This document shows positions 5,839 to 14,281 of a stretch of 64,000 nt of DNA, piece after piece. The stretch covers positions 78,832 through 142,831 of the forward strand of contig JAHLWZ010000579.1 in assembly GCA_020536535.1 (NCBI GenBank). The letters run 5' to 3'. The notes under the pieces are model-generated. The model searched no databases and was not told where the DNA came from. It was given only the letters and a program-made list of their open reading frames with translations. The number at the start of each line of letters is the position of its first letter. Within the stretch, counting starts at the first letter, position 1. The position numbers were made by a program, and so were the translations under genes. The DNA is from Pelomyxa schiedti. Its lineage: Eukaryota; Protista; Evosea.

Positions 5839-7409
5839 TCACTCAGCCCCAGTCCAGATCTCATAAAAACATAAAAATGCCGTTACAATCGAGTACACCT
5901 TGGTGGAGGGAGCGGTGGGTTAGAATTTTTGCACGTGGGGATCTTGGCTTGGGTCGTTGTGTAGTGCATACCCCTAGTATGGATGTTGCTATTCCTACGG
6001 CATAGCGTAGAACTTTGGTGCGGACAATTCGTGTGAGGTAGGCGGCGAAGGGAGTTGCTAAAGTAGATCCAATGATGAGGTAAACCACCAGGTCGTAATC
6101 ACCTTTACTGCCTGTGGGTGTCATTTAGATTTCATGGGGAAAGCTGGTTTTGCGCGGAACCTATGCCCTGAATGGCGTTGCAAGCTAGGGAGCAAATTAT
6201 ACCACACAGGCTTATTATTGCCTCGGAAGCAGATGTTGCTGCTATTGCGTTTTTTTGTGGCCGACCGCATATCTGTCAAAGTTAGATTTCACCCAGTTTA
6301 GGGATTGCAATGACACCATTTGGCCCGAAACCGCAATAGGTCCGTAACCTCCTCCACTTATCCCCTTGTTGAACCCCGTTATCACTCCCAGAATCGCGAT
6401 TTTCCACCATCTGTAGCTTACCTAAAATCTGTGTGAACAAGATTACACTTCGTGGCACTCATACAATTAGTCTGATTGCCGTAAAGAAGATTATTATGAT
6501 TCCCATGGCAAGTACCATGATTGCTATGTACAGCTTTATTGCAAATTTTTGTTTTGCGGACCAAGAATACTTCGCGTTAATGATCGTACTAATAATACAG
6601 CCTGCAACTCCAAATACAATAAGCAACGTAACTACCTGATTATTTAATTTATGTTAGTTCCCCTACCGAGTACGTTCTCCACTCTGGATTACCTGCATAT
6701 CCTTGGTGAATTTGCATTGCTTAGCTTTAGCGTAGCATTTGACAAATAAACTGGTCTCCGATTTCTGACTTTCCACATCCAAGTCCAATTCATCAGGAGT
6801 TTTCTGAACTTCCGGTCTTGCAGAAGGGCTAGATGGGGATGATGGAATTGCGGGTGATGTTTTATCACCTGAGTCATTTGTTTCATCGACAAACGCCTCA
6901 ATCTATAATGAAATGTGATGAAGGGACAACGCATGAAAAGAAGTACGGCTTCGTCTCCAAGACCCTCCATCTCCACTTCCTTTCTTACTTCAGCTTCATA
7001 GCTTTTATCTAGCCGGAGACATTTCACTACCGATTTGGGAAGATATTTATTTGGATCGAACCCTGTCCAAATCAGAAATAAGGCAAGAGGACTACGATCC
7101 AAGGCTTACCCCAATTGAGATTCTTGAAAAGCGTATGAAAAATCGTTGCAAGTATGCCAGAAGTTAGTTCCGACACAAGTACTGACTGTACAATAGTTTT
7201 CCTTTTCAAGGAGAAGGCAGGCGTCATCAAAATTGGAACTAGTGTGGTTCCATATCCCATGCCTAGTGAACTGTCTGTTGTACTGTGAGCGTTTTTTGAG
7301 TGGGGTTGTTGGGAATTTGCATTACCTATCAGTTCACCAAAGAAAGATAGAAAAGGAATCACCACATAAACCCATGTGGGGTTGGTATCCTCACTCCAAG
7401 AGCCAGTAA
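5839..7409 (-). CDS. tauE: TauE/SafE (TSUP) family putative sulfite/anion exporter with a hydrophilic central insertion
   Basis: Spliced N-terminus FLSFFGELIDSSLGMGYGTTLVPIL is the TSUP first-helix motif. C-terminal helices read LIIGSTLATPFAAYLT...LRYAVGIATSILGVYSI. Confidence 0.8.
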
Positions 7410-7505
7410 CTGCTGTGCTGTTACTCATACAAACAAAACCAAAAATTTCTTCTTTTTGTTGTGTTTGGCCTAGCCACACCAATTTCGAGACAAACCAATC
7501 AATTG

Positions 7506-8075
7506 ATGCGATCAAAGCATCAACCAAACCGCCGGAGCGAAAGTTTCTTCCAGGAAGGCCTCACCAGTGAACGTTGCACAAACAAACTTGCACTTGAAGA
7601 TCGCAATGTCCAACCAACCCAGATTAGCTCTGTCCTCCCAGTTCAGTTCACTCCCGGCAGCCCTCCCACAATAATCCCCTCGTGTCCCCAATACGCACCA
7701 CCGGTAATCTTCCAAGGACACCACACAGAAGAATCCCCCAGAATACTATCAGTCTGGCCAATAGATGTGTCTCACCATATCCTGTGCCGATCAGGACAAG
7801 AACAGGCAAGACTGAGCAGTAATCGAGAATTGTCAACAACTACGACTGCACTACATCAGCAACAAACGAGTGTCGTAGAAGAAATTGGTTGTTATGACCT
7901 CTTCTCTCTGTGTGATCCCAGTGACCATTTTCTCCTGCCTTTCCTACTTAGTTGCCCGTCAGAGCCATTCTCCAGGCACCTGTACTTCTTACCCCTCACA
8001 TGTGTTAAAGCTCCCACCAACACACTGAATCAACAACTACAACACACTACCACGTCACCTTCCTCCTCCCTGTAA
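7506..8075 (+). CDS. Hypothetical intronless protein
   Basis: A 190-codon ATG ORF fills the gap between TauE and the next gene, divergent from TauE. No recognised domain. Confidence 0.4.
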   Translation: MRSKHQPNRRSESFFQEGLTSERCTNKLALEDRNVQPTQISSVLPVQFTPGSPPTIIPSCPQYAPPVIFQGHHTEESPRILSVWPIDVSHHILCRSGQEQARLSSNRELSTTTTALHQQQTSVVEEIGCYDLFSLCDPSDHFLLPFLLSCPSEPFSRHLYFLPLTCVKAPTNTLNQQLQHTTTSPSSSL

Positions 8076-8416
8076 ACAAGAGAAATGCTAGTATTCTAGC
8101 AACCCACTTTTTCCCGCAAAATCGAGTTCTTGTTGTGTGATGCGAGAGGGGTGAAAGGGTGGGTATGATGAGTGGTCGTGGCACAGCGGGAGTTGGTTGG
8201 GCTTGGGGTTGGGTGTCAGATGCATCTACCAACAGTGGTGTCTATCCATTTGGTCAGGGCCTGCACTGCGAAATAAAACAAAAAATAGCGGGTTCCTACC
8301 GCTTGCTTCAATTTGTTTTATGATTTCAACTTCGCCAAAATCAGTTGTAGGAGAAACTTAAATCAAACGTACGTTTTATTTTAAATCCAAGGTCGTTCGT
8401 TGGGTGTCTAATTTCA

Positions 8417-11400
8417 ATGAGAATAACGGTGGCACCCAAGGGAGGTGATTTCACGTCCCTTGGTGAGGCTATTGCTCATGCACCTCCTGATGCCAATATT
8501 CTGGTTTTATCTTTTTCGTCACTGCTTTTTTTTTTTTTCCCTCACTGTAAAATGGCTTGTTTTGTTTTTGGTTTTTGGTTTTTGGTTTTTTTTGTTTTTT
8601 TTCGGGTGGGTACGACAGGTTGTACCTGGTACATATGTGGAATCCAATATGCCTATTGTGATATCAAAATCACTGTCTATAAGTCTGGCAAGTCCAACTG
8701 CACAGTGCAGAGGAAATGGATGCTCTGCAATAATTGTGCCATATGTAAATACCAAGTACGTGCACCTGAGGGACTGTTGTAGAAATTACCTTAGTGATGA
8801 TTAATTATTGGTTTTGTCATATAAATGCTTCTTAGGGCTCCAGCAGGAGAAGCTCTGGTTGCAACTTTAATGAGATCCAGTAGTCGTCGCATTACCAAGT
8901 CATCTTCACTTGCCTCCAGTAATGACTTACAGGGATTCATTACCACGGTTTGTGAGCCTGAAGGGTCCAGTGTTGTGACAGAAAGTGAATTTCCTCTTGA
9001 GGTTGAATATCGACGCAGGCCCATACTTTGTTGTTTTACCTTGTCACCAGCTTCCAATTGGAGTGTTCCAATTCAAGCTCAAAGATCGGCAGCATGCACC
9101 TGTGGGCCACCCCCTTCAAGAAACTTGGGTTCTCACGAATAAGACTGATTTACATTACCGGATGATGTTTATTTCTGATTCTAATGATAAGTTTGACTTG
9201 CAGTTTAAGCCAGAGTCAAGAAAAATGAAACCAGTGTGCCTCTTCCTTCTTATCAGTATAAAAACAGCCCATTGCTTATCCTAACAAGGGTCAAAAAGCA
9301 GCTGTTACGGTTACACTTATTCTTAAGTGCACAACTGAATTGAGGCGTAACATTCCAGTCATTGTGGAAGGTTTTCCTGAGTTACATGTGGGGAATCTAA
9401 GTTTGCTTCAAATAAAGGGTCACAGGTGCCTAGACAGCACGTGTACATTCCACTGAGAATTGGCTCACAGATCACGACTAAGCTGGATTTTGATGAGATA
9501 ACAATGGGAGATAACCCTATTTGTGAAGATGAGCTAGCTGGTACATACCCAGGAACTTGGCGGTCCAGCAAGGTTACTCTCCCTATAGTCTTCACCTACC
9601 AACAGTAACTAGGTACAAGTAAAACTATTGAAAATACAAAATCCAGATGAAATCGCACTTCGCGATTTCATGAGAACAGTCGAGTTAATGGACCAACTTA
9701 GTTGCTCGTCATTGATCAGTAACTCCAAGCAAAATACCCACACTGTAACAACACTTTAGAATTTCTTGGTGCTTCCTCTTCACCGGGAAAAATATGTATT
9801 GTTTTTGAACATGCTGCATGTGGTTCTCTTGAATCAGTTATTGCCCATAAAGTAGTTCCTGAAGCCTTCAAGAAAAGAGTTGTCACTGATATCGCCCATG
9901 GTCAGTTGCCATACTTTAATGACTCCGTTTTACTAAGTATTTGGTTAGGGATGGATTTTCTCCACAAGCATGGTTCTTCCTATCATTTGCATTGCAACTC
10001 ATGAAGCAACCCCATTAGGAGTAGTACACCATAAGCTTTCTCCTGTGACCGTGCTGATTACCTCTCTGGATCATGAGTCTTCCACAGTTGCAAAGCTGAG
10101 GTGAATAGTCCTCAACCCAAGCCTGTGAAGTAATATCAAATAATGCATGTCAGTGAATTTGGATTTCCACGGAGAGGACCTGATGAGCCTGATGGCTATT
10201 CTGTGGAAGCGAATACAATATCCTTTTAGTCATTGTACATGCCCATTTTATTTCCTTGACCTCCAACACATTTATACTGCTCCTGAGTTGTTTCGAGACA
10301 GAGCACCTTTTGAATACCCAGCCGATGTCTACAGGCACCTGATGAGGTCAACAACCAACTCACTAACTTCTTTCCATTACTATCAGTTTTGCTATGGTGC
10401 TTTATTTCCTTTTCAAAGGTGAACATCCATTTTGTGACCCTCACTTTGCTTCAGCAAAAGGTACATAACCAAGGAATTGATACCTGCTTGGTTCACCTCT
10501 TTAGATATTGAAAGTTTTTTGGAAGAAGGAAAACGCTTACCTCTTGATTTTCCTTGTCCTCCCTTGTTGAAAAATCTCATAACTGAATGTTGGGCAGAGG
10601 ATCCCCTATCACGGCCTGGTGGTTGAACACATTTTTTCCTCCCTTTAACACCTCTCAGATTTTCCAGCAATTGTCAAAGAATTAGACCCAGAAAGAGGTT
10701 GCGTGAGATATTCTGCTAGTGAGCTTTCTGCACCACCTGATAATCGCTTGCTTGTTGTTAAAAACTGCAAGGTTGAAATCAAAGGTCATTCTTCCCTTTT
10801 TTTTTGAAAATTACACTCACTCAAAGGGATTGAATTTCGCGGACCTGTGCATGTTAATAACTCAGGCTCACTCAGTATGGAGCAATGCTGCTTACCCTCA
10901 GTGGCTGCCACTGGCAGAGGCACACACATGTCATTACTTCAGTGTACCGTAGATCCCACTAAGTATGGTACGGTATTTTATTGTGCTTTTTTCCTTTGCA
11001 TTGGTTTTCATGTATCATAGGAGTGAATGCCCAATCGTCTTCCGTCAAGTATTTTTTTCGCCCTTCATACCACTTCTCACTTTAATAGATTCAGTGAATA
11101 TGCAGCAGGGACTTTAGACTTAAGCAGTATCTACACTGTTTTTAAACCAACGTTTTGACTTCGCATCATAAGATGTATCGGCTTGCTCAATATCAGGCAC
11201 AGGTATTGAAGTCAGTGGATTTGCTGAGCCCACAATAAGAGCTTGCTCGATAAGATATGGGCAAGTTGGTGTCTCTTTCTGGAAAAATGGGAATGGAGTG
11301 TATGTCCACCTCCGCCTTTCATTCTCGTTGATATAGTACCCTCTCAGTATCGAGAACTGTTGTATAAGCGATACTGGCTTAGCTGGAATAGAAGTAGCAC

Positions 11401-14281
11401 GTGCTAGTGCACCGACAATTAGGGGTTGCAGTATATGTAGTTCAAGGGGGTTTGGAATCACCTTGCATGATAGTGGCAAGGGCACCATAACTTCTTGTAA
11501 TATTTATTCGAACATGAGGGAAGGAGTTGATGTAAGGACTCTTTTGCAGTAATATAGTAACATCAGTAAGGTACATAGGACTAGTCAAGCTGTATTAGTA
11601 AGTAGTTATGTACATCACAATGCAAAAACTGGAGTGCATTTGATCGGTTCAAAATGTGAGATTACAGGGTGTCATATATTTTCTGTATGTCCTAGTGTTC
11701 CTACTACCAATAGTCTCACAAGTATTTTCTTTTGTAGAATGAACTCGCAGGAGTAAGAACATCACATTCCAAACTTAACATGTGTCAATGTTGGATACAA
11801 GGAAACAAGCTCCCCGGGCTTGTTATTTTGCGAGATTCTAAGGCTCATGTAACAAATTGTTGTTTCAGAGCAGGTGAACAGTCTGGGTGTGCAACCGCGT
11901 GTTTCTCTCTATCTGTCTTAATAACTGGTTCTTGTAGTATCTTTTTCTGTAATGGTGGCCATGGGTCTGTCGAGAAGTGCACTATCTCAAGCAACAGTCT
12001 GGCTGGGGTTGAAATTTCTACAGACTCGGATCCAGACATTCGCCACTGTATAATTGATTCCAACAAGTATGGTGTTCACTATAGAGACAGAGGTAGTACC
12101 CCTTCCTTCCAAATCTGCTAAAGTTTGAAGGGCTTGGCCATCTGGAGAACTGTACAATCATACGTAACAGCAGTAGCAATATCCGCGTCTTTGATGAAAG
12201 TGAGCCTTTTATTCGGGCCTGTCGAGTATTTGAAAGTGGGGGTGTGGGAATACGCTTCAGTAATTGTGGGAGTGGCGCGATCTTGGAGAACTGCGACATA
12301 GCGGCGAGCAATGCATCAAATGTAGAGATAATTGGGAACTGTAGCCCCACAATAAGGTCCTGTCAAATACATGACGGGAACGAAACAGGACTGAGATTTG
12401 ATAAAGAAGCCAGTGGTATGGTTGAACTGTGCACGATTTTTCGCAATTGCTTAGAAGGAATAAGTGTACGTAACTTGGCATACCCTCTTATTAGGAAGTG
12501 TCTTATTGTAGAAGGGCTGCAGGTTGCTACATTACACGATTTACTTTGCTTAACGATTGCTATCTAACAGAGCGGAATAGTATTGCACTCGTGTGGGTCC
12601 TCCACTTTAATAGACAACTGTGAAATTCATTCCAATACAACCTCTGGTATAGAATTAAGTAAAAATAGGTTTGTATAATCAATGGTTCCTTCTTAATTCC
12701 CCAATAGTGCTCCTATTATCCGGGGATGCAACATTCATGAATGCCTTTTTGCTGGTGTCCAGTACTTAGACGAATCAGGTGGCTCTCTTCTGGAGTGCAA
12801 AATATCCAACAATGGAACACCCATGAGACCTCAACCTGGAATTGAGGTTCCTAGTATGGGCGGGCCAATTATCAAAAATTGCGTGATTGACGGGAGTGCA
12901 ATAAGTACCAAGAGCACCCAGGAGACACCCCGACCAAACTTGAGGATAGCGCAAGTCATTTTCACACCAGGTGAAATTGCTGCTTCAACAGACAACTACA
13001 ATGAAAGTCGCAAATTGGGGGAAGGTGCCCATGGTAAGGACAATAGCTGAATGATCGTTACCATTTATTTTGTACATTAGGTATCGTTTTTAGAGGTGTT
13101 CTGCACGGAACTCCTGTGGCAGTTAAGGTTATGGATAGCAAACTGCGGTCCAGTGTGAAAAAAGGATTTGAATATGAAGTTCAACTTCTCAGCACATTTA
13201 GGTAGTAAACAGGAAAAAGAAGAATAATAACACCAGACATAGGCACAGAAACCTGGTCCCACTTTTAGGCTGTTGCAGTGGTGAACCACTGGCTCTCGTT
13301 TATGACTTAATGGAAGGTGGGGCCCTTAAACCTCTATTGAAGCAAGCTCGGCGTTCTTTTGCAAAAGGTGTTTTATTTCTTTTGTGGGTGGCTTTCTGAG
13401 AGGTTTTACTAGATCAATCTGATTTACTTCCATGGAAGCAGAGACTTAATATTGCAATTGGATGTGCACGTGGTCTCTTATTCCTACATGCAACAACAAA
13501 ACCTCCTGGTATTCTTCTCTTGTTGTATGATCCATATCTCACCTTCTTTGCAGTGATTCACCGTGATTTCAAAAGTGCAAATGTATGGCCTACTTACTTT
13601 TTCCTTCTTGGACACACAATGTCTAGGTGCTCCTCGACAGGCACCGAGAACCCAGAATTGGTGATTTTGGTCTGGCACGTCTTCTGCCAGAAAACACTCA
13701 AACAGGGAATTCTGCTGGAACTCCAGGATATGTATGATACCGCCCTCTTCACCACAGATTTTTCAATGAAAAAAAAAAAAAAATTAAGATATGCCCTGAA
13801 TATGACGCCCATGGCACACTCACAACAAAGGTTGTCCCTTCTTCTCCAGCTGTCCAACTGATTTCAACCAGGTGGATGTGTACAGTTTTGGAGTGGTTCT
13901 TATGGAACTTCTTACCGGGATGCCGGCACTGTTGTATGATAAAGACGACAACGGAGATGTAATTGAAGACTCCGAAATGCCGCTCCCTGAATGGGTGGCA
14001 TATAACATTGCACGGGGTATGAAACGAACCCCCGAAAATCCCCTTAGCGCAATACTACAACCGAACTGGCCTGTCGATGTGAGTGATTATTCACTAGCAC
14101 ATATCCTCTCACTTACAATTCCTAGATTGCTGTTAGTTTGTACAATGTAGCCCGGCAGTGCCTCGTTTCAGAGCAAGATAAAAGGGTCTCTATGGCTGAT
14201 GTTCTCGCCACGCTTGAGGTCATTGAACTTACTGCTACGGAATATGTTGGTGCCACAAACGAGAGTGAGACTGGTGAATAA
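8417..14281 (+). CDS. Multidomain protein: parallel beta-helix N-cap, MSP-like domain, TKL-type pseudokinase, PbH1/FBXO11-like beta-helix repeats, RLK/Pelle(IRAK)-like kinase
   Basis: N-terminus ITVAPKGGDFTSLGEAI...VVPGTYVE. MSP-like FQFKLKDRQHAPVGHPLQETWVLTNKT. Degenerate kinase (VQVK, HHKLSP, EFG, YTAPE, DVYSFAM, CWAEDPLSRP) joined in one exon (about 10659-10784) to resumed beta-helix sequence. Repeats such as IENCCISDTGLAGIEV and VEKCTISSNSLAGVEI. Intact second kinase GEGAHG/VAVK/HRDFKSAN/DFG/GTPGY. Stop at 14279-14281. Confidence 0.85.
10218..10269 (+). other. U12-type (minor spliceosome) AT-AC intron, 52 nt
   Basis: 5' site ATATCCTTT, branch point TTTCCTTGAC at 10251-10260, 3' end CAC. 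Removal joins ...GYSVEANT|IYTAPE in frame. I found no convincing GT-AG solution that keeps both the EFG and APE motifs. Confidence 0.9.
10335..10386 (+). other. GC-AG intron
   Basis: AG|GCACCT...ATCAG|T. Removal restores kinase subdomain IX DVYSFAMVLYFLFKGEHPF. Confidence 0.8.

Follow-up and report, generated by a model that had tools for sequence, protein, structure and literature searches.

Larue and Roy (2023) classified the annotated introns of more than 3000 genomes, taking at least two minor snRNAs as their criterion for presence of the minor system (PMC10639083). In that survey, Pelomyxa schiedti had comparatively many minor introns (n = 90), and massive minor-to-major conversion was described for this species (PMC10639083). 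Minor introns thus make up about 90 of its 149,016 annotated introns (PMC10639083, PMC8887013). The P. schiedti genome annotation, built with Augustus, PASA and EVM, comprises 98.41% GT-AG introns, 1.59% GC-AG introns and one GT-GG intron (PMC8887013). Since these are the types listed, the annotation holds no AT-AC intron. Mastigamoeba balamuthi and Entamoeba belong to the same anaerobic amoebozoan clade as Pelomyxa, yet they are reported to lack the minor snRNAs and the minor-specific proteins (Zarsky et al. 2021, PMC8136499). Among the Archamoebae, only Pelomyxa has kept the minor system. A preliminary description of the DNA considered here, made from its letters, had supposed an anaerobic archamoeba that retains minor splicing. 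The organism is indeed one, P. schiedti, and the retention of minor splicing in its lineage had already been published with the 90 introns of Larue and Roy (PMC10639083).

The window, the whole 64-kb stretch of the P. schiedti genome analyzed here, contains a very probable 52-nt AT-AC intron at 10218-10269 that comes from the same species and the same assembly as those 90 introns. It lies, however, in sequence without a gene call, and because the survey takes annotated introns, it cannot be among the 90. The intron resembles the AT-AC U12-type introns of Hall and Padgett (1994) and Tarn and Steitz (1996), both cited in PMC10639083, in having the 5′ site ATATCCTT, a TCCTTRAY branch-point sequence about 10 nt from the 3′ end and a terminal AC, and in lacking a pyrimidine tract between the branch site and the 3′ end. 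Unlike the minor introns of animals and plants, which are biased away from phase 0, this predicted intron is in phase 0, and it is only 52 nt long. In these respects it is like the minor introns of Blastocystis, which have a median length of 39 bp, are mostly AT-AC and in many cases lie in phase 0 (Gentekaki 2017; PMC10639083), although Blastocystis, unlike Pelomyxa, is a stramenopile and belongs to an unrelated lineage. The intron had been called very short for its class; this holds only in a relative sense, given a median of 45 nt for local major introns and of 39 bp for the minor introns of Blastocystis. The features of the locus, in window coordinates (record coordinate = window coordinate + 78831), are as follows.

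8417-14281, + strand: whole gene, with an N-terminal region, a pseudokinase, right-handed beta-helix repeats and a C-terminal active-type kinase (VIHRD, DFG)
9474-10784, + strand: predicted pseudokinase domain, 10 exons, 302 aa (spliced model; exon pieces are partial Pfam PK_Tyr_Ser-Thr matches)
10101-10153, + strand: upstream major-type GT-AG intron, 53 nt (spliced model)
10154-10217, + strand: exon 6, (S)EFGFPRRGPDEPDGYSVEANT, with the DFG equivalent and the activation loop (spliced model; 11/18 identical to the paralog exon)
10218-10269, + strand: predicted U12-type AT-AC intron, 52 nt, phase 0 (JAHLWZ010000579.1:89049-89100)
10218-10225, + strand: 5′ splice site ATATCCTT, matching the minor consensus RTATCCTT at 8/8 positions
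10253-10260, + strand: branch-point sequence TCCTTGAC, a perfect match to TCCTTRAY, in which the A at 10259 is presumed to be the branch point
10267-10269, + strand: 3′ splice site CAC, the AC of which is in frame
10270-10334, + strand: exon 7, IYTAPELFRDRAPFEYPADVY(S), with the APE motif (spliced model and paralog comparison)
10335-10386, + strand: downstream intron, GC-AG in the model (ag/gcacctga...atcag/t), the GC donor applying if the protein, like the paralog, has DVYSFAM here
10394-14281, + strand: GenBank gene model, 979 aa, beginning at the internal Met of SFAMVLYF

The segment 10218-10269 reads ATATCCTTTTAG...TTTCCTTGACCTCCAACAC, with TTTCCTTGAC at 10251-10260. Its termini, AT at 10218-10219 and AC at 10268-10269, are one of the two pairs that the U12-type class allows (AT-AC or GT-AG), and the distance from the branch A at 10259 to the last intron base at 10269 is 10 nt, at the lower edge of the 10-15 nt range. 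The coordinates, the 52-nt length, the 5′ site, the spacing of the branch A from the intron end and the CAC terminus given in the preliminary description were all correct when read against the sequence. Because AT is repeated at both intron borders, an identical product would result from removal of 10220-10271 (AT-AT), and it is the U12 consensus that sets the borders at 10218 and 10269. An earlier AC, at 10266-10267, was rejected as the 3′ site, being out of frame and just 8 nt from the branch A. By every sequence criterion that we tested, the assignment to the U12-type AT-AC introns holds, and we are confident that 10218-10269 is a genuine minor-class, U12-dependent AT-AC intron in P. schiedti.

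If the intron behaves as is established for its class, U11 snRNA, and after it U6atac, would pair with the 5′ site ATATCCTT. U12 snRNA would pair with TCCTTGAC, bulging the A at 10259. Of the ACs beyond that A, the first to lie far enough away, at 10 nt, would serve as the 3′ site, and ...EANT would then be joined to IYTAPE... in phase 0. We infer that the junction 10217^10270 is used in vivo and that the minor snRNPs of P. schiedti act on it. Rfam scans at gathering thresholds of the window and of three P. schiedti loci (L001-L003), about 86 kb of distinct sequence of this genome, returned no hit, a result that carries little weight for the genome as a whole.

The exons on either side give the frame in which the intron must be removed. 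Excision of 10218-10269 joins ...GYSVEANT to IYTAPELF... in phase 0 with the frame open and with homology unbroken, so that the proposed fusion of the EFG-containing frame to IYTAPE is borne out. When all GT-AG, GC-AG and AT-AC-like pairs between exons 6 and 7 were enumerated, ATATCC...CAC was the sole join with strong signals, and no GT-AG pair in that interval links the EFG frame to the IYTAPE frame. A single GC-AG join of the two exons was rejected, having a poor donor and adding unrelated residues. Compared with the 18 corresponding codons of the paralog, exon 6 has 4 identical codons, 7 that differ by synonymous changes only and 7 that are non-synonymous. Since 7 of the 11 conserved codons have changed only synonymously, indicating selection on the protein, exon 6 is truly coding, and it must therefore be joined to exon 7.

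Two other introns of the spliced model have alternatives. At 10335-10386 a GT donor at 10347 would keep the frame and add RHLM; the paralog has a GT-AG intron (ag/gtaggtc) at the same phase-2 site. At 9701-9729, homology to the kinase motif HxxNxLxFxG (YPHCNNTLEFLGA) points to a GT-AG intron of 29 nt, although the shortest of the 78 annotated introns that we mapped has 38 nt; the alternative 59-nt intron from 9701 to 9759 would delete the motif.

The 5′ motif RTATCCTT occurs 9 times in the window, where 3.27 copies are expected, a number that exceeds those of all of 100 shuffles. Only the copy at 10218, however, is combined with a TCCTTRAY that is suitably spaced from a matching 3′ end. Chance would supply about 0.005-0.06 such composites per 64 kb, by an analytic estimate from the motif frequencies in the window that precedes any demand for gene context, strand or frame; one was found, 10218-10269. 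The other eight copies (6697, 16781, 38739, 42102, 45276, 50875, 53036 and 55053) were rejected for want of a usable branch site and 3′ end; 16781 is antisense to the local gene, and 38739 and 53036 fall within coding sequence.

The host gene extends from 8417 to 14281. Collinear tblastn matches to two paralogs begin at the ATG at 8417, Pfam Beta_helix and kinase matches follow, and the motifs of the C-terminal kinase were read from the sequence. The pseudokinase domain, 9474-10784, is interrupted by 9 introns of 29-53 nt, of which 7 are GT-AG, one is AT-AC and one is GC-AG in the model. The domain keeps the VAIK-type lysine (VQVK). The catalytic segment VVHHKLSP has HHK for HRD, SEFGF has EFG for DFG, and the HRD and DFG aspartates that mark an active kinase are both absent. 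With HHK and EFG in place of HRD and DFG, the domain is therefore a predicted pseudokinase; the paralogs carry HHK or HRN. The close relatives found are P. schiedti paralogs only, in agreement with the suggestion that the pseudokinase is lineage-specific. We also considered whether the intron site is shared with the C-terminal active kinase of the same gene and rejected this: the intron between DFG and APE in that kinase (GTATGA..., GTPGY/ICPEY) lies two codons away and is major-type.

The GenBank record of this locus (L003, 24,458 bp of JAHLWZ010000579.1, assembly GCA_020536535.1) is 100% identical to window 4419-28876 in reversed orientation, and an ORF of 813 codons near the gene matches the P. 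schiedti hypothetical protein Pelo_7295 at 99% identity. The 979-aa model is the sole GenBank gene called at the locus, and window 7261-10393 carries no call. Yet the segment 8417-10393 is intact, and from its ATG onward both paralogs are collinear with it. Its parts are a beta-helix-like start at the N terminus (MRITVAPKGGDFTSLGEA...), a domain in the middle and the pseudokinase. The GenBank start at 10394 lies just 3′ of the AT-AC intron and of the intron 10335-10386. We attribute the downstream start, and the uncalled 8417-10393, to the fact that Augustus-type predictors disallow AT-AC borders, and the two consecutive non-canonical introns may be the cause of the start at 10394. It had been anticipated that gene predictors would mis-model this exon, and the annotated model does begin past the intron.

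Relatives were sought among 1.84 billion representative proteins with a beta-helix exon of the gene. Two full-length, collinear relatives were found, both from P. schiedti: KAH3764471.1 (P0010) and KAH3765956.1 (P0005). Over its 302 aa, the spliced domain shares 56% identity with residues 248-542 of KAH3764471.1, and the alignment is unbroken across the junction, where SEFGFPRRGPDEPDGYSVEANTIYTAPELF of the window is matched by SDFGFPRRDNDEQPGYAVD, a three-residue gap and VYTAPELF in the paralog (EANT/IYTAPE against GYAVD, the gap and VYTAPE). Between GYAVD and VYTAPE the KAH3764471.1 locus has an annotated intron of 110 nt, L001:4743-4852, which starts with GTATCCTT and has CCTTAAC 16 nt before its AG. 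It is a U12-type GT-AG intron in phase 1, and because it is annotated it could be among the 90. It lies within 1 nt of the intron site in the window, in phase 1 there versus phase 0 here. The two sites agree within 1 nt and not exactly because a three-residue indel falls at the junction.

To judge how distinctive these signals are in P. schiedti, we can compare them with the 78 annotated introns of three genes that were mapped, all of them GT-AG and at least 38 nt long (median 45 nt). Fewer than two mismatches to RTATCCTT are found in just one of the 78, the paralog intron L001:4743-4852. A TCCTTRAY within one mismatch, on the other hand, is present in 9 of the 78, so the branch motif is only weakly discriminating in this species. 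Because look-alikes of the branch site are common in the genome, the 5′ site is the discriminating signal. Minor introns are rare in P. schiedti, and hence independent insertions 1 nt apart are very unlikely. The parsimonious reading of the sequences is that the two genes share an ancestral minor intron that would be older than the paralog duplication. The idea of a recent minor-intron gain is thus unsupported: the paralog, at 56% identity and with flanking exons that have diverged at many synonymous positions, has a U12-type intron within 1 nt, and the intron predates the split of the paralogs.

In the KAH3765956.1 locus (L002), the corresponding intron is a major-type GT-AG intron, L002:3788-3933, with its 3′ site at the same codon as that of the window intron. 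Its annotated donor, GTAAGA, removes the activation loop (DFEI/AYTAPE). Past GTAAGA the frame stays open into VRRNPIPSEITG, a sequence similar to the PRR... loop in the window gene and in KAH3764471.1, and the loop would be retained by a GTGTTC donor lying 36 nt further downstream. Possibly the L002 model is mis-annotated, or else the loop has recently been turned into intron. The sequence CCCTTGAT, near the 3′ end of this P0005 paralog intron, was considered as a U12 relic and rejected, since 9 of the 78 ordinary introns match equally well. At the shared site the introns of the two paralogs are 110 nt (L001:4743-4852) and 146 nt long (L002:3788-3933, the longest of the 78), against the median of 45 nt.

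The same data allow other explanations of 10218-10269 to be weighed. The main transcript might skip exon 6 altogether, with a 129-nt major-type GT-AG intron, 10101-10229, joining ...VAKLS to HCTCPFYFLDLQHIYTAPE...; the ATATCC...CAC segment would then be partly exonic, and its look of a minor intron a relic or a chance match. This join, which the preliminary description had named as the alternative, does exist in frame and free of stops, as derived by hand from the sequence and the exon phases, and the acceptor ttttag at 10224-10229 looks usable. We nevertheless regard it as improbable as the main product. Synonymous changes in exon 6 have left it conserved with the paralog, whose intron at this position is of the U12 type as well. 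Moreover, the residues HCTCPFYFLDLQH, which skipping would include, have no counterpart in either paralog, and 129 nt is about threefold the local median intron length of 45 nt. From the sequence, 10101-10229 may be spliced in a minor isoform.

Still less probable, to the point that we would be surprised by it, is that 8417-10393 is a decaying, unexpressed remnant, with the annotated 979-aa model being the real gene and the intron motif having no function. GenBank calls no gene across window 7261-10393. A protein collection searched with P0010 248-542 (candidates of 792-2520 aa) and with P0010:330-500 (candidates of 94-299 aa) gave no transcript-derived ORF of the gene in either length class, as would suit such a remnant, and an exact 35-mer of exon 7 found no match in JGI metagenome contigs. 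However, more than 10 upstream exons are open, collinear and 36-76% identical to the paralogs from the start codon on, the annotated model begins at an internal Met that falls inside a kinase subdomain, and both minor-intron signals are perfect. We hardly expect, finally, that the intron is real but spliced by the major spliceosome as a rare U2-type AT-AC intron. Such introns occur in other eukaryotes, and the branch sites of major introns in P. schiedti often resemble TCCTTRAY (9/78), but a perfect ATATCCTT 5′ site is diagnostic of the U12 type, and none of the 77 mapped major-looking introns has fewer than two mismatches to RTATCCTT.

With 10218-10269 read as a U12-type AT-AC intron, the three genes of this Pelomyxa-specific family would have one site in three states: an AT-AC U12-type intron in phase 0, a GT-AG U12-type intron in phase 1 and a major GT-AG intron. 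It is tempting to see in these a series of subtype switching and minor-to-major conversion, with the AT-AC subclass missing from the annotation and the figure of 90 an underestimate, a proposal that we offer tentatively and would place somewhat short of an even chance.

What is new here is the unannotated intron at 10218-10269; minor splicing in P. schiedti was already published, and the accepted distribution of minor splicing is unchanged. For the gene itself the model needs correction: its extent is 8417-14281, against a GenBank start at 10394, and an unannotated pseudokinase belongs to it. For the organism, AT-AC minor introns would exist in P. schiedti but be invisible to the published annotation, in which the subclass as a whole is apparently unannotated; minor-intron counts in this species are therefore probably too low, and the models of other P. 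schiedti genes may likewise be truncated. The paralog set, for its part, provides a small, concrete case in which a change of minor-intron subtype, or conversion to major introns, can be considered.
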